From positions 1,364,001 to 1,428,000 of the forward strand of contig OZ251237.1 of assembly GCA_965240325.2 (NCBI GenBank): a stretch of DNA of 64,000 nt. Reading direction: 5' to 3'. This document shows positions 9,759 through 27,600 of this stretch, one piece after another. The notes below the pieces were generated by a model. The model was not told where the DNA came from. It searched no databases and saw nothing but the letters and a program-made list of their open reading frames with translations. Made by a program: the position numbers and the translations under genes. The stretch is from Rebecca billardiae RCC1528 (Eukaryota; Protista; Haptophyta). Each line of letters opens with the position of its first letter. Position 1 is the first letter of the stretch.

Positions 9759-13009
<3,251 letters not shown>

Positions 13010-13278
13010 CGTTCGAAAGCGCCCGCGCTGGGCGAGGCGAGCTGACGGTTGGCCCGTCACGTTGGCACTGCACGAGTGCTGCAACTTGGCGTGCGTCGCG
13101 CGCGCAGCCCACCCGCTGCGGGCCCGGACTTTCAGCCCGCTCCGCGGGCCGCTCGCGTCGCCCGGATTCCTCCTTGCCGCGCGTCCGCCCTCAGACGGTG
13201 GCGGCGGTGCGCACCCCGGCGACGCCCGCGCGCACACACGGCAGGCGCAATCCAAGCGCGCAGGCGGAGGGCGGCGAG

Positions 13279-16072
13279 ATGGAGCTCCTGCCCGCGCGAG
13301 AGACGCCCGAGACGCCCGCCGGCGCCTCCGCGGACGGCGAGTGCGCCGGCGCCGGTGCCGGCACGGCGGCGGCGGCGGAGGCCAACGGCGGCGGCCGCGG
13401 CAGCGAGCAGCTCGTGTCGAAGCTGCTGCTGGAGAACTCGCAGCTGACGAGCACGATCGCGCAGCTCGAGGCGGAGCTGCGCGACATCGACCCCGTCTCC
13501 CGCCGCGCGAGTGCCGACGCGGCCGCGCTCGCCGCCTCCGAGGGCGAGGGCGAGCCGCTCGCGCCCGACGGCGCGCGGCCGCCGCCGCTGAGCGGCTTCG
13601 AGGCGTGGCACCGCCGGCTGCGGGTGGCGCACGGCGCGCTGGCGCGCGCGCGCGAGGGCGAGTCGTGGCTCGAGCGGCTCGAGCGCCAGCGCGCCGGCTG
13701 GGGCCTGCTCGACCGCTTCCGCGAGCGCGAGGCGCGCTCGCGCCACCACGGCTTGGGCGGCTCGGCCGCGGGCGCGGGCGGCGGCGCGGCCGCGGGCGGC
13801 CACCCGCCGGACGAGGCGATGTCGCGGAGCGCGCGCGGGCGGGCGCGCTCGATGGGCGGGCTGCCTGCGCACACGCCGGGCTCCGCCGCGCTCAGCGCCG
13901 CGTGGCGCCGCGCCGCCTCCGCGCGCCGCACGCCCGCCGAGCGCGCCGACTCCGATCGCCACGCCCACGTCGCGCTGGCGCAGGCGCGCGCGTGGTCGCG
14001 CGCGGGCACGGACGACGGCGAGGGCAGCGAGGAGGAGGAGGAGTGGGGCGAGGAGGGGGACGAGGACCTGCCGGCGGTGAGCCTGCCCACATACGAATCG
14101 TGCGCGCGCGCGCGCGCGCCCCGCGCCGCGCGCGACCTCGGCGCGCGAGCGCGCGGACGCAACGGCTGCTGGCTGCCGCGCCGCCGCCGCGCCGCCGCCG
14201 CCGCCTGCCGCCCGACTCCGCCGTGGCGATGTGGGCCTGCGTCGTGCGCGCCGCCCGCTTGGCTCCCGCGCCGCAGGTACGACTACGTGCGGCCCACCTC
14301 GCGGCTGCGCCTCGAGGCGCTCGCGGCCGCGGCGCAGCGCGGGCGCGCCGCGCTCGAGCGCGATGCGGTGCTTGACTCCCTCGTGGCCGGCGTGTTGCTT
14401 CCCTTCCTCGTCGGTGTCGCGGTGGGCACGTCGGCGTACGTGAGCAACGCGCTGACGGACGTGCTGATCGACGTGAAGTGGCGCTGGACCTTCGCGCTGC
14501 TCCACGGCGGGCTGTGGGGCGTCGCCTCCTTCCCCGTCTTCGCCGGCTTCTGCGTCGGCCTGACGTCGCTCTCCGCCGGCATCGCGCTGCTCGCGCCCGC
14601 CGCGTGTGGCTCTGGCATCCCGCATGTGAAGGCGGTGCTCAACGGGATTCGGGTGCCCGGCACGCTGAGCGCGCGGACGCTCGGGGTGAAGCTCGTGGGG
14701 ATCACGCTCGTCGTCGCGTCGGGCGTGCCCGCCGGCCGCGAGGGCCCGATGGTGCAGGTGGGCGCGGGCGTCGGCTCGCTCGCTCTGCAGGTCTATCACG
14801 CAGCGCTCGAGCGCGGCTGGCCGCGGCGCGCGAGCACACAGCTGCGGCTGCTGGACGAGGTGCGTGGCGGGCGGGTGCGCGTGGCGGATGCGCGTGCGTG
14901 GGCGGGGTCGTGCGGCTCGGGGGCGCCTGCTCTGCGCCCCGCCGCCGCCCCGTGCCGCGCCGCGCCCGCGCCCCCCTCCCCCGCCCCGCAGCCCCGCAGC
15001 CGGGGTGGGGCGCGCACGCGCGCGCGCGCTCGCTCGCTGCGAGAGAGACAGCGCGCCACAGCGTGACACAGCGCGCCGCCTGTCTGCCGGCCTCCGCGCC
15101 GCACCCCGGCGCGCGCGCGCGTGGTGGGTCGCTCGCAGGACGACTACAAGCGCGAGTACGTCTCGATGGGCGCGGCGGCGGGCGTCGCGGCCGCGTTCAA
15201 CGCGCCGATCGGCGGCGTCCTGTTTGCGCTGGAGGAGGTGTCGACGCACTGGTGCGCGCGGCTCACGTGGCGCTCCTTCTTCGCAGCCATCATCGCGGCG
15301 GTCACGATGAACTACCTCGTCTCGGGGCGCGAGCGCGGCGTGATCGAGGACGACGCGCTGGTGGTGTTCGGCGCGTTCGACCTCGCCTCCTCCTTCAAGG
15401 TCTCCGAGCTGCCGTACTTCGTGCTCATCGGCGTGGGCGGCGGGCTGCTGGGCGCCGCGTTCAACGCCCTCAACGGGCGCCTCAACCGGTGGCGGCAGCG
15501 CGCGCGCGACAGGCCGGGCGGTCTGCTCGTCGAGCTCGCGGGGGGCTCGGTGCGGCGCGCGAAGGTGGGCGAGGCGGCGTGCCTCGCGCTGCTCGTCGCG
15601 TCGGTCTCCTTCTTCCTCCCGCTCCTCTTCGGCTGCTCCGACGCGGCCGACACCCTCGGCGGCGGCGGCGGCGACCCGCTCGCGCGCGCGGGCGGCCGGC
15701 AGATCCGCGTCGAGTCGTTGCTGGTGAGCGTGCAGTGCACCGCTGAGGGCCAGTACAACGAGATCGCCTCGATCACGCTGTCGAACCAGCACCGCGTGGT
15801 GCGCGCGCTCTTCTCGCGCAACGCGGCCGGCGCGCTCTTCGCGCCGCACTCGCTGCTCGTCTGCCTCCTCCTCTCATTCGCGCTCTCGGTGGTCGTCTAC
15901 GGCGCGGCGATGCCGAGCGGTCTGTTTGTGCCGTGCATGACGATGGGCGCGCTCGGCGGGAGGCTGGTCGGCGAGCTCGTCGCGGCGGGCGCGGCGAGGG
16001 CGGGCGCGGAGGCGGCGGCGGGCGCGGCGGCGGGCGCGGAGGCGGTGCTCGCCGCGATGCCCGCCGACGCGC

Positions 16073-16115
<43 letters not shown>

Positions 16116-17517
16116 GCGCGGCCCTGGCGGCGTGGACACTGGCTTCTACGCGCTGATCGGCGCGGCAGCCATGCTGGGGGGCGTCACGCGGATGACCATC
16201 TCGCTCGTCGTGATCATCTGCGAGATCTCGAACGACGCGGGCGCGCTGCTGCCGCTGATGGCGGCGATCCTGACGGCGAAGGTCGTCGCCGACTTCTTCA
16301 ACCCCTCGCTCTACGACGCGGCGATGGCGCTCGCCGGCTTCCCATTCCTCGAGGATGAGCCGCCACGGCGCGCGGCCGACGCGCTCTGCGCTGCGGACGT
16401 GATGACAAGCGGTGTGCGCGCGCTGCCGACGGTGGTGCGCGCGCGCGAGGCGGCGGAGGCGCTGCGCGAGAGCGCACACGCCGCGCTGCCGGTGATCGAG
16501 CGCGGACGCGCCGGCCACGGCCGCACGCTCGTCGGCTCCGTCCGCCGGTACGAGCTGTCAGCGCTGCTGCGCGCGCGCGCGTTTGTCAGGCCGGGCTCGG
16601 GCGCGCCGCCGCTGCGCTCGCGCACGGAGAGCGTCGGCAGCGCGGCCGGCGGCGGCGGCGGCGCGGGGAAGGGGAAGGGGTCGCAGCCGCCCGAGCTGCT
16701 CGACCAGCTGTCCGCCGGCAGCGCCTCCGCCGACGGCGCGCACGCGGGCTGCGCGCCCGCGCGCCCGCTGCCGCCGCCGACGCCGCCCCTCGCCACCGCC
16801 GCGTCGCCGCCGCCGTCGCCGCCCGCGCCGCCCGCGCGCGCCGCCGCGCACGCCGAGCCGGAGTGGGTCGCCGACGCCAGCCGGGTGAGCCTCGCCGAGC
16901 TCGTCGCGGAGCGGCGCCGGCTGCGCGCGCCGGCCTCCTCCTCCACCGGCGGCGGGTACTCGTTCGGCGGCGGCGGCGGCAGCGGCGCAAACAGCCGGCG
17001 CGCGTCGGCCGATCGCGCGGCCGTGTCAGCGGCGGACGGCGCGGACTCGGCGCGCGGCGCCGCCCTGCCTTCCCTCGACGCGGAGGACGCGGAGTGGTGC
17101 CTCGACCTGCGCGCGATCATGGAGCTCGCGCCGATGACCGTGCTCCCCGCCACCCCGCTCGAGCGCGTGCACCGCCACTTCCGCTCGATGGGCCTGCGCC
17201 ACCTGTTTGTGGTCGACCGCCGGCACCGGCTGCTCGGCGTCGTCACGCGCAAGGAGCTGCTGCCGCAGGTGCTCGAGCAGGAGGCGGAGGACGCGACGCA
17301 CCCGCGCGCGCACGGCGCGCTGGCGTACGACGCGCAGCAGATGCGCACGCCGGACAAGCAGCGCTCGACGCACGGCCCCTCGCCCGCCACCTCGCCCGGC
17401 CGCGCGCCGCGCGACGGCTTCGGCGCCGCCGCCGCTAACGAGTCAGATGGCCGTGACAACGGCGGCGGCGCGGAGGGCGCGGGCCCGTCGCAGATGCCGT
17501 CATCGGCCACCTGCTAG
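13279..17517 (+). CDS. CLC: CLC-family Cl-/H+ antiporter (CLC-6/7-like) with CBS domains; introns 14100-14276 and 14860-15138
   Basis: Spliced ESYDY motif, GSGIP, GREGP (gating Glu), GAAAGVAAAFNAPIGGVLFALEE, PSGLFVP, GGVTRMTISL, C-terminal CBS (FRSMGLRHLFVVD). Confidence 0.93.
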
Positions 17518-17596
17518 TGCCTAGTGCTAGTGCCTAGTGCTGACGATGTACTGCTAGCATGAAGAGCATACAGTCGTGGGTCGTTGCGCATCATGA

Positions 17597-20221
17597 ATGC
17601 TGCAGGTCTGGAGTGCCGAGGCTTGGTATGGTATGGGCCGAATAAAAAGGGGCGCGATTCCTGGGGATTCCTGGCGCGTCCCGCCGGTCGACGTAGAACG
17701 TAGAGCCCCGCTGGCCGCGCGTCAGGGCGACGGGACGCGCTGCTGGTCGATGGTATCGACTGCGCCACCCCCAACGCCCCTGCCGCGCGCGCGCCTCGCG
17801 CTGGTGGCATGGATGAACGTGAGCGAGGCGCTCGTGCACACGATGTGTCTCCCATTCGCCCCCTTCATGGTGCAGCACCTCATCGGAGCCGACGACGCGG
17901 ATCCTCGCATCGCGTACCTCCAAGGCTGTCTGGTCGCGGCGGCCAGCCTGGCCGAGTTCGTTGGCAGCTACCCGCTAGGCTTGCTGAGCGACCTGATCGG
18001 CCGGCGGCCGGTCATTCTGCTGGCCTTATTCGCGACCACCATTTGCACGCCGGCGTTTGGCTTCGCCACCTCGTACGAGATGGCTTTTGCTGCCCGCACA
18101 GTGCGCGGGCTGTGCGCGGCCGTCACGGGTACGACCAAGACGTACCTGTACGAGATCACCGACAGCTCGAATCGCGACCGCGCGTTTAGCGTGCTGATGG
18201 CATGCTACGGCTTCGCGCTGTGCATCGGGCCGACCCTCGGCGGCGCGCTCTCCGAGCCTGCCCGCACGTGGCCGTCCACCTTCCCCAATGGCTCTCTCTT
18301 CGACCGCCACCCGTACGCGCTCCCGTGCGTCGTCGTCGCGGCGTGCAGCGGGGCGGCGGGCGTGTGCGCGTGGTTCATGCTCGCCGAGACCGTGCACCGA
18401 CGCTCCCCGTCGATCTGCTGCCTCGACACCCAGCCGCTCTTGGACAAGGGCGCCGCGGACAGCGAGTCTGGCGATGCCTCGAAGCAGTCGGCTCAGGGTG
18501 GGTCTGACGCGAGCGGCAGTGCCGCTGGGCGTGGCGGCAGCAGCGCACTCGGCCGCACCGCCTGGCTGGCCGCGGTGCTGTACGGGATGGTCGCGCTGGT
18601 GGTGGAGATGATACAGGTGCTGTGGGTGCTGTGGGCCAAGCTGCCCCTCGCCCAGCGCGGCCCGCACCTTGACGTGCGCACGATCGGCCTCTTGCAGGCG
18701 GTCGGAGGCGTGGGCATGCTCTTCTCGCAGGCGGTCCTCTACCCGCATGCCGTGCGCGCGTTCGGGCTCAGCCAGACGTTCCGCCTGGGCTGGGTCGGGC
18801 CGGTCGTCGCGTATGTGGCGATCCCCTTCACGGTCCAGCTCGCTCCGCCCGAGGGCGGGTGCTGGCCCTCCCCGTTCTGCGCGTTGCTGGCGGTGCTCGA
18901 GCTGCTGCAGATGGCAAGCAGCTCGGCGCTCTTCACCTGCGTCATCCTGATGCTCTCCAACTCGGTGCCGAGCGGAGAGCTGGGAGCCGCGAACGGAGTG
19001 GGGCAGTCGATCGCGTCCATGGCGCGCTTCGCCGCGCCGCTCTTCAGCGCTACTCTCGTCGGCCAGCTCGCCTCTGGCGCGCCTCCGCTCGACGTGCGGC
19101 TTGCCTTCTTTGCGGTGGCAGCGTTCGCGCTGCTCTCGGTGGCACTCTCGTACGCGCTGCCGCGCTCGATCGACCACGCGTTCGACGGCGCGGCATCGCT
19201 CGCTGGGGCGCCCGCGTCGCGGCGGCCGCACGACCCGAATCGTTTGCCAGCCGCGATCGAGCAGCGCATGATGTGCGCGCCGCTGGGGGCCGCTGACCCC
19301 CATGCCGTCGCGCTCGCGCGTGAGCGGCTCTCGGCGGAAGGGATGGTTGTGATCGACAAGGGCGCCGCGTTCTCCTCAGCGGACGAAGTGCGCGCATGGA
19401 GCGCGGCTCTTTTCTCGGCTGAGTATGACTACACTCGCAGCGGCGCGGCCGCTCGCGACAACCTGGGCGGCGGCGTGCTCGCCACCACCGGCAAGGCCGA
19501 GCGTTCGGCCGTTCAGCTTCTCGAGCACCCCGAGATGAGCTACGAGCGTGAGTACCCTGGGAAGCTGCTCTTTGCGTGCTTCGAGTGTCCGCCCGACAAG
19601 GCGCAGACGACGCTGCTCGAGACCAGCGCTCTGACGCGCGCGCTGCGAGGGACAGCGCTCTGGCACAAGCTCGAGGCGCACGGCCTCACCTACCACTTCA
19701 AGTACTACTCTGCGGACGAGGTCGGTCCAGGCGGCCCGCCGCCAGTCCTGCGCCCGTGGCAGGACTTCTTCGGAGTGCGCACGCGCGCTGAGCTCGAGGC
19801 GGAGCTCGGGCGGCGGCGCATGCGCGCAGAGTGGCTCCAGGGCGAGGCCGGTGTGGTGCGTGTCTCACAGACCCTGCCTGCCTTCGAGCTGGACGACCAG
19901 GGGGACTTGCGTGTGCACTTCACCCTCGCCGTTCACGGCTGCAAGTTCGACCCTGACCCCGCGTGGAAAGGCGTGGCGCACATCGACAGGCCGTATCACT
20001 TCACGCTGGGGGACGGCGCCGAGCTGACGCACGCAGAGCTGGAGCTTGTAAGAGGCATGTACGACACGCACCGCGTGCTGCTGCCGTGGGTGCCCGGCAG
20101 GCTTGTCGTGCTTGACAACCAGCGCTGGATGCACGGCCGTGTCGCTTTTGCACTCGAACCACACGAGACGCGCAAGATCGGCGTCTGCACAGGGGAGAAG
20201 CGCACACGGCGCCTCGTATGA
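17597..20221 (+). CDS. Fusion of an MFS transporter (DHA1/ZIFL-like) with a C-terminal TauD/TfdA-type Fe(II)/2-oxoglutarate dioxygenase; likely start 17750
   Basis: MFS motif A GLLSDLIGRRPV, GPTLGGAL, ELGAANGVGQSIASMARFAAP. With no stop in between, HPEMSY...PGKLLFAC and W.PGRLVVLDNQRWMHGR follow (HxE...H facial triad), about 19320-20221. Confidence 0.85.
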   Translation: MLQVWSAEAWYGMGRIKRGAIPGDSWRVPPVDVERRAPLAARQGDGTRCWSMVSTAPPPTPLPRARLALVAWMNVSEALVHTMCLPFAPFMVQHLIGADDADPRIAYLQGCLVAAASLAEFVGSYPLGLLSDLIGRRPVILLALFATTICTPAFGFATSYEMAFAARTVRGLCAAVTGTTKTYLYEITDSSNRDRAFSVLMACYGFALCIGPTLGGALSEPARTWPSTFPNGSLFDRHPYALPCVVVAACSGAAGVCAWFMLAETVHRRSPSICCLDTQPLLDKGAADSESGDASKQSAQGGSDASGSAAGRGGSSALGRTAWLAAVLYGMVALVVEMIQVLWVLWAKLPLAQRGPHLDVRTIGLLQAVGGVGMLFSQAVLYPHAVRAFGLSQTFRLGWVGPVVAYVAIPFTVQLAPPEGGCWPSPFCALLAVLELLQMASSSALFTCVILMLSNSVPSGELGAANGVGQSIASMARFAAPLFSATLVGQLASGAPPLDVRLAFFAVAAFALLSVALSYALPRSIDHAFDGAASLAGAPASRRPHDPNRLPAAIEQRMMCAPLGAADPHAVALARERLSAEGMVVIDKGAAFSSADEVRAWSAALFSAEYDYTRSGAAARDNLGGGVLATTGKAERSAVQLLEHPEMSYEREYPGKLLFACFECPPDKAQTTLLETSALTRALRGTALWHKLEAHGLTYHFKYYSADEVGPGGPPPVLRPWQDFFGVRTRAELEAELGRRRMRAEWLQGEAGVVRVSQTLPAFELDDQGDLRVHFTLAVHGCKFDPDPAWKGVAHIDRPYHFTLGDGAELTHAELELVRGMYDTHRVLLPWVPGRLVVLDNQRWMHGRVAFALEPHETRKIGVCTGEKRTRRLV

Positions 20222-20476: not shown

Positions 20477-22237
20477 TCACCACAGGCTCTGGCCGCCCTC
20501 GATCACGAGGTTGTGTCCCACCATGTACGAGGACGCGTCGGACGCGAGGTACACGACCGCCGCCTGCAAGTCCGTCACCTGCGCTAGCCGCCCGGCCGGG
20601 ATCTGCTCGAGCCAAGTGGCGGCAAGCTTGTTGAGTGCGGGGTTGTCCCAGATCAGGGGGGTGTCCACAATGCCAGGCGAGATGCAGTTGACGTTCAGGC
20701 CGCGCGACGCCCACTCGCACGCGAGAGACTGCGTCAGCTTGACCACGGCCGCCTTGGACGCGTTGTACGCCGCCTGCTTCTGCGGGTGCGGCACGAGCAG
20801 CGACGCCATCGACGCCGTGTTGATGATCTTGCCGCTGCCGCGCGCGAGCATGTGCCGCGCCTCGTGCTGGCAGCAGAGGAAGACGCCGCGTGTGTTGAGC
20901 GCGAACGTGAGGTCCCAGTCGGCGACGGGCGTGTCCTCGGCGGCAGAGTTCTTGTTCACGCCCGCGTTGTTCACCGCGATGTCGAGGGCGCCCTTCCACG
21001 CCACCGCCGCGTCGACCATCGCCTTGACGCTCCCCTCGTCCGCGCAGTCGGCGCGCACCGCCATCGCCTCTGCGCCCTTTGAGACCAGCTCGGCGGCCAC
21101 CGCGTCCGCACGCGCCTGGTCCAGGTCGGCGACGGCGACGGCGGCGCCCGCCTCGGCGAGCGCGTGCGCGAAGGCGCGGCCGATGCCCTGTCCGCCGCCG
21201 GTCACGAGGGCCGTCTTGCCGCTCAGCTTGAGGCGGTCGAGGATGCGCGCGCCCCCCACGCCTCGCGTCACCTCGTCCGGGCCGGCTGCGCCGCTGGGCT
21301 GCGGCGGCGGCGCAGGGGCCGCCGCCGGCACGGGCGCCGCGGCAACCTCGGCGGTGGGCACCGGCGCCGGCGGCGGTGGCGCCGCGCCCTTCAGCCGCAC
21401 GATCGTGATCCCGTCGCGAAGCGGCAGCGTGACGATCTCGACGCGCGCGTCCGCCCTCACCATCTTGTTGAACTCGCGCAGCGCCTCGCCGCCCGCGTTC
21501 CAGCTGTGCGGGTCGTGCGCGGCGCGGCCGAGGTAGGGCACGCCCTTGAAGAGGACGTTGTCGATCACGATCACGCCGCCCGGCGCGAGCAGCCCACGCG
21601 AGAGCACCGTCTCGTAGTACGCCGCGTACGAGCCCTTGTCCGCGTCGATGAACACCATGTCAAGCGGCTGCGCCTGCGGCCACGCGCGCAGCGTCTCGAG
21701 CGCGTCGCCGATGCGCACGCGGATCTTGTGCCCGTGGGGCGACTTGTCGAAGATGGGGCGGGCAAAGGCCTCAAGGAACGGGTCCACCTCGCACGAGATC
21801 ACCTCGCCGTCCTCGGGCAGCGCCTCGGCGATCGTGAGCGCGCCGTAGCCGGTGAACATGCCGACCTCGAGCACGCGCCGGGCCTTGAGCATGTACGCAA
21901 ACATGGCGAGCGTCTTGGCCTCGACGATGTCCGTGGTCCACCGCTCGGAGAAGCGGAACACCGTCTTGCCCTGCGCGTGCAGCTCGTCCCACGGCGCGCC
22001 GCGCGTCTTCCGCTCGAGCTCGGCCGCCTCGGGTGACGGCGCAGACGTGCACTCGACCAGGTACTCGTCCAGGCCACGCGAGAGGCTGGCCGCCTCGTCG
22101 AGCAGGGCGGTGAGCCGCTCGTTGGGCGTGTCAGGCACGAACGCGACCTCCTGCGCGGACGGTGGCGCGGACGACTCCGCTTTCGCCGCAGCGGCGCCGT
22201 GCGCGCGAATGCCCGCGACCGAGCTGGCCTGCTCCAT
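20477..22237 (-). CDS. MT-Ox: Bifunctional O-methyltransferase / NAD-dependent oxidoreductase (MT-Ox, gadusol synthase type): MysB-like MT domain plus classical SDR
   Basis: MT domain: LDEYLVECTS, VLEVGMFTGYGALTIAEALPEDG, CEVDPF, SPHGHKI, DMVFIDADK, IDNVL. Pro/Ala linker. SDR: TGGGQGIG, NNAG, IINTASMASLLVPHPQKQAAYNASK, ending HNLVIEGGQSLW as I recall for fish MT-Ox. Start placed at MEQASS; the ORF extends to 22351. Confidence 0.9.
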   Translation of the reverse strand: MEQASSVAGIRAHGAAAAKAESSAPPSAQEVAFVPDTPNERLTALLDEAASLSRGLDEYLVECTSAPSPEAAELERKTRGAPWDELHAQGKTVFRFSERWTTDIVEAKTLAMFAYMLKARRVLEVGMFTGYGALTIAEALPEDGEVISCEVDPFLEAFARPIFDKSPHGHKIRVRIGDALETLRAWPQAQPLDMVFIDADKGSYAAYYETVLSRGLLAPGGVIVIDNVLFKGVPYLGRAAHDPHSWNAGGEALREFNKMVRADARVEIVTLPLRDGITIVRLKGAAPPPPAPVPTAEVAAAPVPAAAPAPPPQPSGAAGPDEVTRGVGGARILDRLKLSGKTALVTGGGQGIGRAFAHALAEAGAAVAVADLDQARADAVAAELVSKGAEAMAVRADCADEGSVKAMVDAAVAWKGALDIAVNNAGVNKNSAAEDTPVADWDLTFALNTRGVFLCCQHEARHMLARGSGKIINTASMASLLVPHPQKQAAYNASKAAVVKLTQSLACEWASRGLNVNCISPGIVDTPLIWDNPALNKLAATWLEQIPAGRLAQVTDLQAAVVYLASDASSYMVGHNLVIEGGQSLW

Positions 22238-22511
22238 GCCTTTGACTTGATTGCTCGTTGGCCGGCGATCAGCGAATTGATGAGAATGTACCTGATGAAC
22301 CTTCATCAATGTGTGCATCAACGCGTCTGACCTTCCTTTGATTCCGCGCATCCGCTACTTGATCCCTGCATGGGATGAAAAGCGGCGTGGTAATTATAAT
22401 AATAAACCATTCATTAATTAAATACCCCATAGTACGTTGAACGTGTACGGTATTTTCTCCGGACTGTCCATCCCGGGTCGGTGAACGTTCGCGCGATCAC
22501 GGAGGACGAAG
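22238..22511. promoter_or_regulatory. Putative bidirectional promoter between MT-Ox and EEVS
   Basis: About 274-bp divergent intergenic region with an AT-rich core (taattataataataaa, 22391-22420). Confidence 0.5.
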
Positions 22512-23945
22512 ATGGTGGGCCCCGCCACCTTCCAACTTGCCTGCGTGCTCCTTGCCGGCGTGCACTCGCCGCTGCACACCTCCACGCGCGTTACGGCGTT
22601 GCGCGGGCACGCCGACACGCTCGCGTTCTATGACGACGCCTGGCACGCCCACGCCGACCCATCAACCGTGCCGCCGCACGCCGTGCACTCGGCCGCGACG
22701 ATCAAGGAGGACTCGCTGCCGTCCTCCTCCTCGCCCGGGACCTCTACGACCGAGTGGGCCGTGCGCGCGCCGCTCACGTTCGAGTACCGCGTGATCGAAG
22801 CGCCGCGCCTCTTCCACCCCGACAACGACGCCCTGCTCTTCGGCCACCTCGCCCCCGGCTCGGCCGCGCGCGCGCGCGCGCGCGAGCAGCGGCAGCGGCG
22901 GTTGGTTGTGATCGACCAGACCGTCGACGAGCTGTTCGGCGACGGGCTGCGCGCGTACCTCGAGGCTCGGCGCGTGGATCACCAGATTGTCGCACTGCCC
23001 ATGCTCGAGGAGAACAAGGACGTCGACCTCGTTCTCCAGGTCGCCGAGGCGATGAAGCGCTTTGAGCTGGCGAGGCGCGACGAGCCGGTGATCGCGATCG
23101 GCGGCGGCGTCTGCCTCGACGTGGTCGGCCTCGCTGCGACGCTCTTCCGGCGCGGCACGCCGTACATCCGCGTGCCCACGACGACGCTCTCGTACGTCGA
23201 CGCCTCGGTCGGCGCCAAGTCCGGCATCAACTTCATGGGCTCGAAGAACCGGCTGGGCGCGTACGTGCCGCCCGCGGCCGCGCTGCTTGACCCGAGCTTC
23301 CTGCGCACAGAGTCGGCGCGTGGCGTCTCGTCGGGCCTCGCGGAGATGGCGAAGATGGCGCTGGTCAAGTCGCCCGAGCTGTTCGAGCTGCTCGAGGCGC
23401 ACGCCGAGCGCCTCGTCGCGCACCGCTTCCAGCCGCTCTCCGCGCGCGACGGCGTGCCCGGCCGCGTGCTCGGCCTGTCAGTCCGGCTGATGCTGGACGA
23501 GCTGGCGCCCAACCTGTGGGAGGCGTCCCTCGACAGGCTGGTCGACTTTGGGCACGTGCTCGGGCAGGAGCTCGAGCTGCGCACGCTCGGCACGGAGCAC
23601 GAGCTGACGCACGGCGAGTCCGTCGGCGTGGACATGGCGTTCATGACCGTCCTCGCCGCCGTACGCGCGCAGATCAGCGAGGCGCAGCGTGACCGCATCC
23701 TGGCGATGCTGCGCCGCTGCGCCATCCCGGTGTGCAGTGCGATGGTCGACGAGGCGCTCGTGCTCAGCGCGATGGTCGAGCGCCGCGCGCAGAGCATGGG
23801 ACAACGACTGCCACTCCCCGTCGGGGTGGGCAAGGCACGCATCTTCAACGACGTGAGCGAGGACGAGCTGCTTGAGGCACACCGCGTCTGGACCGACCTC
23901 TGCTGCACGCGACCGCCACAGGCGACACCGGCGACGCGCCGTTAG
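22512..23945 (+). CDS. EEVS: Sedoheptulose-7-phosphate cyclase, 2-epi-5-epi-valiolone synthase (EEVS) type, with an N-terminal signal/transit-like extension
   Basis: DHQS-fold motifs AIGGGVCLDVVG, RRGTPYIRVPTT, DASVGAK, KNRLGAY, GLAEMAK, LTHGE. EEVS-type fingerprint MLDELAPNLWE...RLVDFGH, whereas DDGS/MysA reads MLELExPNLHE...RVIAYGH. Confidence 0.9.
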   Translation: MVGPATFQLACVLLAGVHSPLHTSTRVTALRGHADTLAFYDDAWHAHADPSTVPPHAVHSAATIKEDSLPSSSSPGTSTTEWAVRAPLTFEYRVIEAPRLFHPDNDALLFGHLAPGSAARARAREQRQRRLVVIDQTVDELFGDGLRAYLEARRVDHQIVALPMLEENKDVDLVLQVAEAMKRFELARRDEPVIAIGGGVCLDVVGLAATLFRRGTPYIRVPTTTLSYVDASVGAKSGINFMGSKNRLGAYVPPAAALLDPSFLRTESARGVSSGLAEMAKMALVKSPELFELLEAHAERLVAHRFQPLSARDGVPGRVLGLSVRLMLDELAPNLWEASLDRLVDFGHVLGQELELRTLGTEHELTHGESVGVDMAFMTVLAAVRAQISEAQRDRILAMLRRCAIPVCSAMVDEALVLSAMVERRAQSMGQRLPLPVGVGKARIFNDVSEDELLEAHRVWTDLCCTRPPQATPATRR

Positions 23946-24321
23946 TTGGAGCGCGCGACCACGCGGCGAGGAGGGCGTGCCCATACGCATCGCACGGGTT
24001 CGATGCTGTACCTTTCTTAGATGACGGAATCAGATGAGGCGGCCGCTGCACGCGCCTTCATCCAGGCGTAGCTACGCCTGGATGAAGGCGCGTAGATGAC
24101 GAATACTGTACACCACCCGTCACCGTCGGGGGTCCGCCAGATGAAGTTGGGGACTGTCTTCGGTCTGACAGACCTCGGAACGGGAATCAGAGCAGAAGAG
24201 ACACCCTTGACAAGGGCCTTGCCCTTGAGTAGAGCATCAGCGGCTTCGTCAGTACAATACAATATTGATGAGTTCACCCCAGATTCACCCCGCCACTCCG
24301 CTCAGCCGACGCCACGTCACG

Positions 24322-25317
24322 ATGCTCTACGCTGTCACTGGCGCGAACGGCTTCATCGCCTCCCACGTGGTGAGCAAGCTGGTCGAGCAGGGCCACAAGG
24401 TGCGCGCAACGGTGCGCAAGCCCGACGACGAGGCCAAGCTCGCCCACCTCAAGTCGCTCGGCGCGCCGGTCGAGATCGTCGTGCTCGCCGACCTCACGTC
24501 CGCAGAAGAGGTGGCGCCCGCGCTCAAGGGCTGCGACGGGCTCTTCCACATGGCGGCGGTGCACCCGACGTACGGCTTCGAGGAGACGCCCGAAGGCGCC
24601 GATGCGATCATCGCCCTCGCGGTCGAGGGCACCAAGGCGGTGCTCAAGGCGGCGGCCGCCGCGGGCGTGAAGCGTGTCGTCCTCACGAGCTCACTCGCGG
24701 CCGTCGAGTGTGGCAACGACACGGGCGTGCTGACCGAGGCGACATGGTCAAGGGAGGAGGTGTACAACAGCTCAACATCGACGCAGTGGAAGACGCATCA
24801 CGCGTACGTCAAGTCCAAGACGCTGCAGGAGCGCGCCGCGCTCGCCGCCGCCGCCGAGCTCGGGCTCGACCTGCGCGTGATCGCGCCGGGCAACCTATGC
24901 ATCGGGCCAATCCTCAGTACACACATCAACGGCACGATGACGCGCGTGCGCGACGTGGTGCAGGGCTCAAACACGCTGAAGGGCTGCGCAGACCTCGGTG
25001 TAGTCCACGTCTCCGACGTCGCGCACGCGCATGTCGCCGCGATGACCACCGACTCCGCAAGCGGCCGTTACATCGTCGCGCAGAGCATGGTGCGGCTGGA
25101 GGACGTGTTCAGTGCGCTCAAGGAGCTCTGCCCGGACCGGCCGGTGGCGCCGATGACGAACATGGACTACGCGTCGGGCACGCCGGGCAAGGCGCGCGCG
25201 ATTGAGAGCCGCACCGAGGCTGAGCTGGGCGTGCAGTACGTGCCACTCAAGCAGACGCTCAAGGAGGCGGTCGACTCGATGGTCAGCAAGGGCTTCATCC
25301 AGGCCGCCGCCGCGTGA
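24322..25317 (+). CDS. Extended SDR: NAD(P)-dependent reductase/epimerase, dihydroflavonol-reductase / cinnamoyl-CoA-reductase-like
   Basis: VTGANGFIASHVV, VRATVR, FHMAA, KRVVLTSSLAAV, catalytic YVKSK, VHVSDVAHAHV, GRYIV. Confidence 0.88.
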   Translation: MLYAVTGANGFIASHVVSKLVEQGHKVRATVRKPDDEAKLAHLKSLGAPVEIVVLADLTSAEEVAPALKGCDGLFHMAAVHPTYGFEETPEGADAIIALAVEGTKAVLKAAAAAGVKRVVLTSSLAAVECGNDTGVLTEATWSREEVYNSSTSTQWKTHHAYVKSKTLQERAALAAAAELGLDLRVIAPGNLCIGPILSTHINGTMTRVRDVVQGSNTLKGCADLGVVHVSDVAHAHVAAMTTDSASGRYIVAQSMVRLEDVFSALKELCPDRPVAPMTNMDYASGTPGKARAIESRTEAELGVQYVPLKQTLKEAVDSMVSKGFIQAAAA

Positions 25318-26118: not shown

Positions 26119-27600
26119 TCAGTCGCCGTTCTCCTCCGTCATCTTGCCGATGCACAGGTCGACCTTCGCCCAGCGGTTGCCCGACCACACGTTGCGTGCG
26201 AGCAACACGGGCACGTGTACGCAGTGCTGCGCGATGAATGGCAGCGGGTCAGCAGCGTCCCAGTACGCGTCCTTCTTGCTTGCCAAGATGTGCAGCGCTG
26301 CGCGCGCGCGCTCGAGCACCGAGAGCCCGCGCGGCGCGAGCACCTCGTAGTACAGATCGGCCAGCGTCCAGTTCACCTCCTCCGCGGCCGGCACCGGCTG
26401 CACCGCGTCCGCGGGCGCGTCCGCGTTGGCCGCCATCGCGCTCGGTTCCGCGAGCAGCGCGCGGCCAAAGTCGGCCATGTTGCGGTGGTACGAGGTGACG
26501 TTGGACGAGAGCCGTGGGTTGCACTCGATCGCGCGCGCCACGCCGTCCTCGCCGACGAAGAAGTCGATGCAGACGATGCCGCTCAGCTTGTACGTGCGCA
26601 CGAAAGCGCTCACCCAGTTGAGGATGGCCGAGTTGCCCGCGTGCGTGTAGTTGAAGCACGAGATTGAAGCCTGGTTGTCCGTGAAGGTGAGCACGCGCCC
26701 GTCAGTGCACAGCGCGCACGAGGAGTACTCGACGCCCTCGAGCACCCCCTGCACGAGCCACGGCGCCTCCGCGCTCACGGCGAGCCCCGAGACGTACGCG
26801 CGCAGCTGTTGCTCCGCACACGGCAGCTGGAAGAGGTCGAGCCTGCGCATCGGGTCGTAGTTGCACGACTTGAGCAGGTAGCGCTTGGGCGAGTGGCGCG
26901 GGAGAGCGGCGTTGAACGCGAGGATCTCGTCCATCGAGCGCATCCGCTGCGTGTCCGGCATGGGCAGCCCCGCCTCCTTCGCCTTCCGCGCGAACACGAC
27001 CTTGTCGTCGAGCGCGAGCACGTCCTGCTCACAGAGCGACCAGCTGCGCACGCCCGGCGGGAGGCGCGAAAAGGCGCGCGCCTCGTACCGGCTGGCGGAG
27101 GGCGAGGTGACCGGCACGACGAGACTTGCGCCCTCGCGCTCGACCAGCTCGCGGATCGCGCGCTCGAACGCCTCGGACTGCTGCTCGGGGACAGGCACCG
27201 TCACAAACCTGTCCACGTGCATGGAGAAGCGCGACGCCACCATCCAGTACTTGCGCGTCTCGACGAGGATGACGCGGCAGCCCGCGGCGCGGAGCGCGCG
27301 GCACATGACGAGCGACTTGGTCATCTTACCGCCCGTCACGATCGCCGTCTTGCCGTTGAGCGCCAGCGGGCGCTTGCGGGCGCGCGTGCGCAGCCACTCG
27401 AGCGCCGCGCCGACGATCGCAGCCGTCACGACAAGGGGCGCGAGCATGGCGAGGCAGCCGAGGCAGAGCAGAGACCACGCGCGGGGCTCAATCATGTCGC
27501 GCAGGGAGCGCGCATGCGTTGCCACCGGCGAAGCCTCGCCCTGCTGCGCGCGCAGCGCATCCCCGACTCCGCGCGGCTCGACTGTGCAGGGCAGGCACAT
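26119..27600 (-). CDS. mysC: ATP-grasp ligase MysC (mycosporine-glycine synthase type); start 27600 or 27495
   Basis: N-terminal hydrophobic segment, TGGKMTKS...GCRVILVETRKYW...RFS..VDRFVTVP, PVTSP, LDDK..F, YLLKS..YD..RRLDL..LP, AIECNPR, DPLPF, and C-terminal W.KVDLCIGKMTEENGD, all typical of cyanobacterial MysC. Confidence 0.92.
   Translation of the reverse strand: MCLPCTVEPRGVGDALRAQQGEASPVATHARSLRDMIEPRAWSLLCLGCLAMLAPLVVTAAIVGAALEWLRTRARKRPLALNGKTAIVTGGKMTKSLVMCRALRAAGCRVILVETRKYWMVASRFSMHVDRFVTVPVPEQQSEAFERAIRELVEREGASLVVPVTSPSASRYEARAFSRLPPGVRSWSLCEQDVLALDDKVVFARKAKEAGLPMPDTQRMRSMDEILAFNAALPRHSPKRYLLKSCNYDPMRRLDLFQLPCAEQQLRAYVSGLAVSAEAPWLVQGVLEGVEYSSCALCTDGRVLTFTDNQASISCFNYTHAGNSAILNWVSAFVRTYKLSGIVCIDFFVGEDGVARAIECNPRLSSNVTSYHRNMADFGRALLAEPSAMAANADAPADAVQPVPAAEEVNWTLADLYYEVLAPRGLSVLERARAALHILASKKDAYWDAADPLPFIAQHCVHVPVLLARNVWSGNRWAKVDLCIGKMTEENGD

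Follow-up and report, generated by a model that had tools for sequence, protein, structure and literature searches.

Zebrafish EEVS makes EEV (2-epi-5-epi-valiolone), which zebrafish MT-Ox turns into gadusol (Osborn et al. 2015, PMC4426668). EEVS enzymes are distinguished from the desmethyl-4-deoxygadusol synthases (DDGS) of the MysA type by a few active-site positions, i.e. His360, Asp281 and Leu267 of EEVS correspond to Thr347, Ala268 and Glu254 in MysA/DDGS; the importance of the Asp281/Ala268 and Leu267/Glu254 pairs has been confirmed by mutagenesis, but, in the literature covered here, no such support is reported for His360 (PMC10666671). This three-residue fingerprint is routinely used in annotation and decides whether a gene is called as part of a gadusol or of a mycosporine pathway. 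Algal genes of the EEVS-like/MT-Ox kind have already been published for Aureococcus and Coccomyxa (PMC4426668) and for green algae (PMC7826186), and the green algal cluster has been proposed to produce mycosporine-like compounds that are built on a gadusol core (PMC7826186).

Here, we analysed a window of 64,000 nucleotides from Rebecca billardiae RCC1528 (assembly GCA_965240325.2, contig OZ251237.1, positions 1,364,001 to 1,428,000 of the forward strand; all coordinates below are those of the window). An uninterrupted and intron-free ORF at 22512..23945 on the forward strand encodes a protein of 477 aa, which its Pfam domains and its match to ValA identify as an EEVS-type sedoheptulose-7-phosphate cyclase. 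The Pfam domains DHQ_synthase (PF01761, 5e-30) and DHQS_C (PF24621, 3.5e-18) are both present. Among solved structures, the best HMMER match was the EEVS ValA (4p53; 286 bits, E 3.8e-84) followed by the DDGS Ava_3858 (5TPR; 189 bits, E 1e-54), and true dehydroquinate synthase (DHQS) structures scored at most 131 bits. The AlphaFold (AF2) model, which was built from a 16-sequence alignment and is of moderate confidence (mean pLDDT 72, with low confidence at residues 232-259 and 332-344), matched 4P53, 5TPR and DHQS structures at a probability of 1.00, and its TM scores of 0.86 to 4P53 and 0.79 to 5TPR gave the same ranking as the sequence comparison. In total, we conclude from the two domains, the fold and the Glu/His/His metal ligands described below that the cyclase belongs to the sugar phosphate cyclase (DHQS-like) superfamily.

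The gene was also present in a second assembly. The Logan contig L001, which derives from a public run, is 99.5% identical to, and collinear without gaps with, window positions 22398-24084; it encodes the same protein and flanks the ORF by 114 and 139 bases. Thus, two assemblies support the gene model, its lack of introns and the residues treated in what follows. In a search of NCBIfam with the cyclase, no model reached its curated cut-off, and the best matches were sub-threshold aroB models, with 189 bits where 333 bits are required and, for TIGR01357, 181.9 bits where 305 bits are required. In public databases, homologues carry the name "3-dehydroquinate synthase" at JGI and Aureococcus orthologues the name "shikimate 3-dehydrogenase" at NCBI.

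The active-site motifs that an earlier note on this DNA had read from the sequence were all found, i.e. AEMAK starting at residue 277, MLDELAPNLWE at 327, RLVDFGH at 342, THGE at 366 and ERRAQSMG at 423. The metal ligands Glu213, His284 and His300 of ValA, which are identical residues in DDGS, correspond to Glu278 (23343..23345, forward strand, as are all codons given here; conserved in 121/121 rows of the alignment of close relatives described below), His348 (23553..23555) and His367 (23610..23612), and are therefore intact as that note had stated. The ValA sequence from the eLife 2015 source data served as a check on the numbering of ValA; the chain numbers of 4p53 are the native numbers plus 6, because native ValA begins with MTMTKQ and the alignment opens at chain residue 9 with MTKQ. 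Two of the three fingerprint sites are of the EEVS type, as had been claimed: Leu331 (23502..23504; ValA Leu267, DDGS Glu254) was Leu in 121/121 rows and Asp345 (23544..23546; ValA Asp281, DDGS Ala268) was Asp in 120/121 rows. In the common alignment, the Nostoc HK-01 mysA row has E, A and T at the three fingerprint columns. Moreover, the N-terminal block of the cyclase, which had been likened to that of vertebrate EEVS, does match zebrafish EEVS (TTWTVVTPITFTYTV...LLDPSNDTLLLGH).

The third fingerprint site is substituted. Gln427-Ser428 (23790..23795) occupy the columns of His360-Arg361 in ValA and of Thr347-Arg in DDGS. In the alignment to ValA alone, the HMMER posterior at Gln427 was only about 0.5 because the algal protein is one residue short in this loop. 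By contrast, BLASTP against the EEVS of Sardina (51% identity), which placed ERRAQSMG-QRLPLP opposite ERLKHSGGLTRMPLP, and MAFFT with 21 vertebrates agree on the register and thus fix it. We also considered the register in which a one-residue gap lies ahead of the His column, so that Ala426 would be equivalent to His360; it was rejected because the vertebrates and the alga share the flanks E/D-R-x-x-H/Q-S-x-G and R-[LM]-P-L-P in both the MAFFT and the BLASTP alignments. The codon of Gln427 is CAG (23790-23792), and the independent Logan contig also encodes Gln, so that this residue is not a sequencing error. The Gln that had been placed at the third site is thus borne out by the alignments with ValA, vertebrate EEVS and DDGS.

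The residue at column 427 was followed through the relatives of the cyclase, taken as the best 120 matches of a word search in marine metatranscriptomes, MMETSP transcriptomes and metagenomes, which included Aureococcus; all 120 are microalgal or unassigned marine sequences. In these 121 rows, the three metal ligands, Leu331 and Asp345 were kept in 120-121 of 121, and column 427 held Asn in 77, Gln in 25, Phe in 12, Leu in four (Aureococcus has Leu) and His in one, with a gap in two. In a second word search with a more distant algal member as query, a second microalgal group of 75 rows was found that includes a Scyphosphaera transcript and has Phe in every row that covers the column. Among bacterial and archaeal EEVS-like proteins (n=37), which, together with three plasmid genes, were gathered by patterns outside the 427 loop, 35 have His and two Arg. 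All 23 animal or animal-like rows, including 21 vertebrates and Artemia, have His. The earlier note had regarded the Gln as a substitution of this individual enzyme, and this view did not hold up, since the best 120 relatives have Asn, Gln, Phe or Leu with a single His and the second microalgal group is entirely of the Phe type. Moreover, column 427 tracks the tree with only eight changes across 119 eukaryotic rows and is constant within subclades, a pattern that fits purifying selection on a working enzyme.

Trees were inferred with IQ-TREE (LG+C20 PMSF, quick search) from sets of 64 and 87 rows that contained one DDGS row and six DHQS rows. The query and the animal EEVS fell into one eukaryotic clade (100% SH-aLRT) that is nested among bacterial EEVS-like rows; its sister, with a support of 86-90, is a group of bacterial EEVS-like proteins that includes a cyanobacterium and myxobacteria. 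The lone DDGS row branched elsewhere on a long branch and the six DHQS rows formed the outgroup. The position in a clade that contains EEVS, together with the score of 286 bits against ValA and 189 bits against DDGS, upholds the claim that the cyclase is of the EEVS rather than the DDGS/MysA type. Within the eukaryotic clade there are three groups with a support of 99-100% each, i.e. the Phe-type algae, the animals and the crown algae, and the animals and the crown algae pair with a support of 88. The query and the Aureococcus cyclase both lie inside the crown algal clade (100% SH-aLRT in IQ-TREE), and a FastTree analysis placed them in a 30-row Gln/Leu subclade (95% local SH-like support).

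Gln427 is not the only unusual residue of the active site. The prokaryotic EEVS-like set has 48 columns with a conservation of at least 92%, of which the cyclase keeps 43, and the exceptions are Thr225, Gln352, Gln427, Ser428 and Ile444, where prokaryotes have Leu, Pro, His, Arg and Phe, respectively. The earlier note had counted one deviating diagnostic residue and thus overlooked Gln352 (23565..23567), which lies in the column of ValA Pro288 and, in the same alignment, of the second His of the DHQS GHxxGH motif. This column holds Pro in 95% of the prokaryotic EEVS-like rows and in every animal row, among them the 21 vertebrates and Artemia; 95% of the crown algal clade have Gln, and nearly all rows of the Phe-type algal group have Met or Leu. 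The fingerprint was reportedly defined by Kean et al. 2014 and Osborn et al. 2017, with 14 sites published, and the Pro288 column may count among these. Moreover, three extra residues directly ahead of the third metal ligand, His367, are typical of the crown algal clade. Ser428, Ile444 and Arg424 are common to animals and algae; since the animals share these residues and yet keep Pro and His, the algal enzymes are not simply of the vertebrate type at the active site. The pairing of animals with crown algae, at a support of 88 that is not decisive, would imply two separate losses of His360 and Pro288, one in the Phe-type group and the other among the crown algae with Asn, Gln or Leu. In total, as judged from the alignments, we conclude that Gln427 is a lineage-typical residue of a microalgal subclade that is paired with Gln352, and that neither of the two would be a lesion or a unique specificity switch. 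In the accessible literature, we did not see this lineage-wide active-site variant described.

The partner enzyme is encoded next to the cyclase. The gene at 20477..22351 on the reverse strand encodes an MT-Ox of 624 aa with an N-terminal O-methyltransferase domain (Methyltransf_3, 2.1e-44) and a C-terminal short-chain dehydrogenase domain (adh_short_C2, 4.2e-59), which is the domain order of zebrafish MT-Ox. The start codons of the two divergent genes are separated by an intergenic region of 160 bp (22352..22511) that has 47.5% G+C in a neighbourhood of 68% G+C and in which, at 22398, the Logan contig begins; this region is probably a bidirectional promoter. Downstream of the cyclase, an ORF of the NAD-dependent epimerase/reductase family (24265..25317, forward strand; Pfam Epimerase 9.2e-22) precedes, at a distance of 2 kb from the cyclase, a gene for a MysC-like ATP-grasp ligase (26119..27600, reverse strand) that matches NCBIfam PRK06849 (1e-67) and is 34% identical (E 5e-84) to the gene in the mysC position of the mys cluster of Nostoc HK-01.

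The divergent MT-Ox/cyclase pair recurs in four related loci, in which the residue at column 427 varies. The cyclase on a metagenome contig (L088) has Gln, and the MT-Ox encoded there is 70% identical to the MT-Ox of the window; the paired cyclases of the Aureococcus genome (L086) and of L089 have Leu; and the cyclase paired with MT-Ox in L085 has Phe. Thus, MT-Ox is kept while column 427 spans Gln to Phe, and the sites with support from mutagenesis are of the EEVS type, so that the simplest reading is that the product is EEV. Likewise, on the simplest reading of these sequence patterns, residue 427 would not set the identity of the product.

Altogether, we consider it likely that the gene encodes an active eukaryotic EEVS-like cyclase that would most probably make EEV as the first step of a sunscreen pathway, with MT-Ox leading on to gadusol. 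In this scheme, EEV would be formed from sedoheptulose 7-phosphate by a cyclase that belongs to the eukaryotic EEVS-like clade and depends on NAD+ and a metal. MT-Ox, expressed divergently from the probable 160-bp promoter region that the two genes share, would convert EEV to gadusol by oxidation and methylation, and the MysC-like ATP-grasp ligase could then decorate gadusol. The match of the ATP-grasp ligase to the gene in the mysC position fits the idea of mycosporines with a gadusol core that was put forward for green algae (PMC7826186). The earlier note had held that the substituted cyclase residue decides what the whole cluster makes, which goes too far, since the MT-Ox fusion next to it carries at least as much information.

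The strongest competing explanation is that the crown microalgal clade, including the query, comprises functionally shifted C7 cyclases, and that MT-Ox has co-evolved to accept their product. The changes from Pro288 to Gln and from His360-Arg361 to Asn, Gln, Leu or Phe followed by Ser, together with the insertion at the third ligand, would then change the stereochemical course of the reaction or how far it proceeds and yield e.g. 2-epi-valiolone or another C7 cyclitol. Two columns that bacteria and the assayed family of animal enzymes retain are indeed altered in at least 95% of the clade, and in some members of the clade the cyclase is fused to a plain O-methyltransferase that lacks an oxidoreductase domain, a hint that the chemistry downstream varies. 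Moreover, a search of the accessible literature found no published assay for any member of either microalgal group, and the green algal genes are likewise without an assay according to PMC7826186. Three observations speak against a shift. The range of column 427 from Asn and Gln to Leu and Phe under a constant MT-Ox is hard to square with a residue that sets the product; both mutagenesis-backed fingerprint sites are of the EEVS type; and green algae with an EEVS-like/MT-Ox neighbourhood make compounds with a gadusol core (PMC7826186, in which the residues of the cyclase are not given). In the evidence assembled here, we found nothing that points to a shifted product, and we regard such a shift as unlikely. 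The broader version, in which the microalgal EEVS-like cyclases would form an unrecognised functional subfamily with a rebuilt pocket and maybe a different C7 cyclitol or stereoisomer as product, appears quite unlikely as well.

An EEV-forming enzyme is also favoured over a MysA-like desmethyl-4-deoxygadusol synthase that feeds a classical mycosporine pathway via the MysC-like ligase. Such a role would account for the ATP-grasp gene 2 kb away, and DDGS lacks His360 as does the query. However, the Glu/Ala/Thr triad (254/268/347) is wholly absent and replaced by Leu, Asp and Gln, the score against DDGS is about 100 bits below that against ValA, the sole DDGS row branches elsewhere in the tree, and the neighbour is an MT-Ox fusion and not a stand-alone methyltransferase of the MysB type. 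A DDGS is therefore very improbable.

We see even less reason to regard the cyclase as a decaying or inactive copy in which His360 was lost by relaxed selection. Although one diagnostic residue of the active site is gone, the frame is open, all metal ligands are intact, 43 of the 48 columns conserved in bacteria are kept, and 24 other sequences of the subclade have the same Gln. Moreover, the ORF is spanned by the 99.5% identical Logan contig, which is consistent with a transcript (the type of the run is unrecorded); a search of sequencing runs gave a single, weak match, which bears no RNA label. Finally, the chance that the cyclase is the 3-dehydroquinate synthase of the shikimate pathway is close to nil: the names given to its homologues by JGI and NCBI and the aroB models as best NCBIfam matches would suggest this, but the aroB scores are far below the curated cut-offs (189 versus 333 bits and 182 versus 305 bits), the DHQS columns Val/Asn/His/Lys-Arg are Leu/Asp/Gln/Gln in the cyclase, and the six DHQS rows form the outgroup of the tree.

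These patterns bear on how the family is recognised. Both microalgal groups, i.e. the best 120 relatives, with the single His noted above, and the 75 rows of the second group, lack His360 while the gadusol partner gene is kept; His360 is thus unfit as a criterion of membership for marine eukaryotes, and tests of what determines the product could naturally start at His360 and Pro288. The patterns also matter for the proposal that the gadusol genes of animals came from algae, since the animals retain residues of the bacterial type that were lost in both algal groups sampled. If the microalgal enzymes were a distinct functional subfamily with another product, the chemistry of the so-called vertebrate-type gadusol genes of algae would differ from that of the animal pathway.

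In comparison with characterised enzymes, ValA is the best solved relative of the cyclase by sequence as well as by fold, and the metal ligands and the equivalents of Leu267 and Asp281 are the same. The query differs from ValA in having Gln-Ser for His360-Arg361 and Gln for Pro288; moreover, its His360 loop is shorter by one residue behind the conserved Gly, three residues are inserted ahead of the third metal ligand, and the N-terminus is extended by about 80 residues. MysA (Ava_3858, 5TPR, and the mysA of the Nostoc HK-01 plasmid) has the same fold, substrate family and metal ligands and is also without His360; however, it has Glu/Ala/Thr where the query has Leu/Asp/Gln, and its partner is a stand-alone O-methyltransferase whereas that of the query is MT-Ox.

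The vertebrate EEVS (zebrafish LOC100003999 and its orthologues, with that of Sardina being 51% identical) belong to the same eukaryotic clade and are partnered by MT-Ox, as a fused MT-Ox adjoins the query. They have Arg424, Ser428, Ile444-Phe445 and the N-terminal W.V..P.TF.Y.V block in common with it. By contrast, the 21 vertebrates and Artemia have Pro and His where the query has Gln352 and Gln427, have Leu or Val at column 225 and are without the 3-residue insertion, and the genes of the query, unlike the vertebrate gadusol pair, are divergent with a 160-bp spacer. The cyclase of Aureococcus anophagefferens (AURANDRAFT_3740/KAK7247646) is 59% identical, belongs to the same crown clade and has the same divergent layout with MT-Ox. 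Both enzymes have Gln in the Pro288 column; the His360 column is Leu in Aureococcus and Gln in the query, and the Aureococcus MT-Ox gene has introns whereas MT-Ox and the cyclase are single ORFs here. Finally, the green algal EEVS/MT-Ox/MysC-like neighbourhood (Foflonker and Blaby-Haas 2020, PMC7826186) clusters the same three enzyme types in a different lineage.

Seven Asn-type cyclases of the crown clade, i.e. the microalgal group to which the EEVS-type query cyclase (22512-23945, + strand) belongs, are fusion proteins (P0043, P0089, P0078, P0059, P0064, P0087 and P0056, all relatives from outside the window). In five of the seven, an N-terminal O-methyltransferase is followed by the cyclase in a protein of ~740 aa, and the oxidoreductase domain was absent from these five. 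In one of the remaining two, the cyclase carries a C-terminal transaldolase, an enzyme that acts on sedoheptulose 7-phosphate, the substrate of the cyclase; in the other, the cyclase is joined to a glutathione S-transferase.

In the window, the O-methyltransferase-oxidoreductase fusion MT-Ox (20477-22351, - strand) lies divergently next to the query cyclase and is directly adjoined by a single ORF (17597-20221, + strand) with major-facilitator transporter and TauD-type dioxygenase domains. The G+C content is very high, at 76-86%, across window positions 10001-18000 versus 60-70% in the remaining window.

Residues 1-80 of the query cyclase (22512-22750, + strand) comprise a leader and an N-terminal extension. 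The extension is common to the algal clade, contains the motif GNL..DD[T/A]W (query residues 35-45), and is predicted by the structure model to form beta strands. It is preceded by a variable hydrophobic leader (query residues 1-33, pLDDT <50), which could be a targeting signal.

A second sizeable microalgal cyclase group (P0165-P0238 and P0104), with a Scyphosphaera transcript from MMETSP among its members, carries Met or Leu in the column of ValA Pro288 and Phe in that of ValA His360; at least one locus of this group has a divergent MT-Ox neighbour (L085, 5776-9617).

Many homologues are labelled '3-dehydroquinate synthase' by JGI, and the Aureococcus orthologues P0148, P0150, P0151 and P0154 are called 'shikimate 3-dehydrogenase' in NCBI records; both names look wrong. 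Separately, the metagenomic relatives P0027 and P0023 have isolated oddities (RLLHLSY for RLVDFGH; KHSMD...PLS in the His360 loop), which look like assembly or frame errors.

In the tree, the animal group forms one clade with 99% support, and P0256 falls within it. Two archaeal EEVS-like proteins, from a Methanomassiliicoccales MAG and Candidatus Sysuiplasma (L031 and L034), have Arg at the His360 column and are the sole prokaryotic exceptions at this column among the sequences compared.
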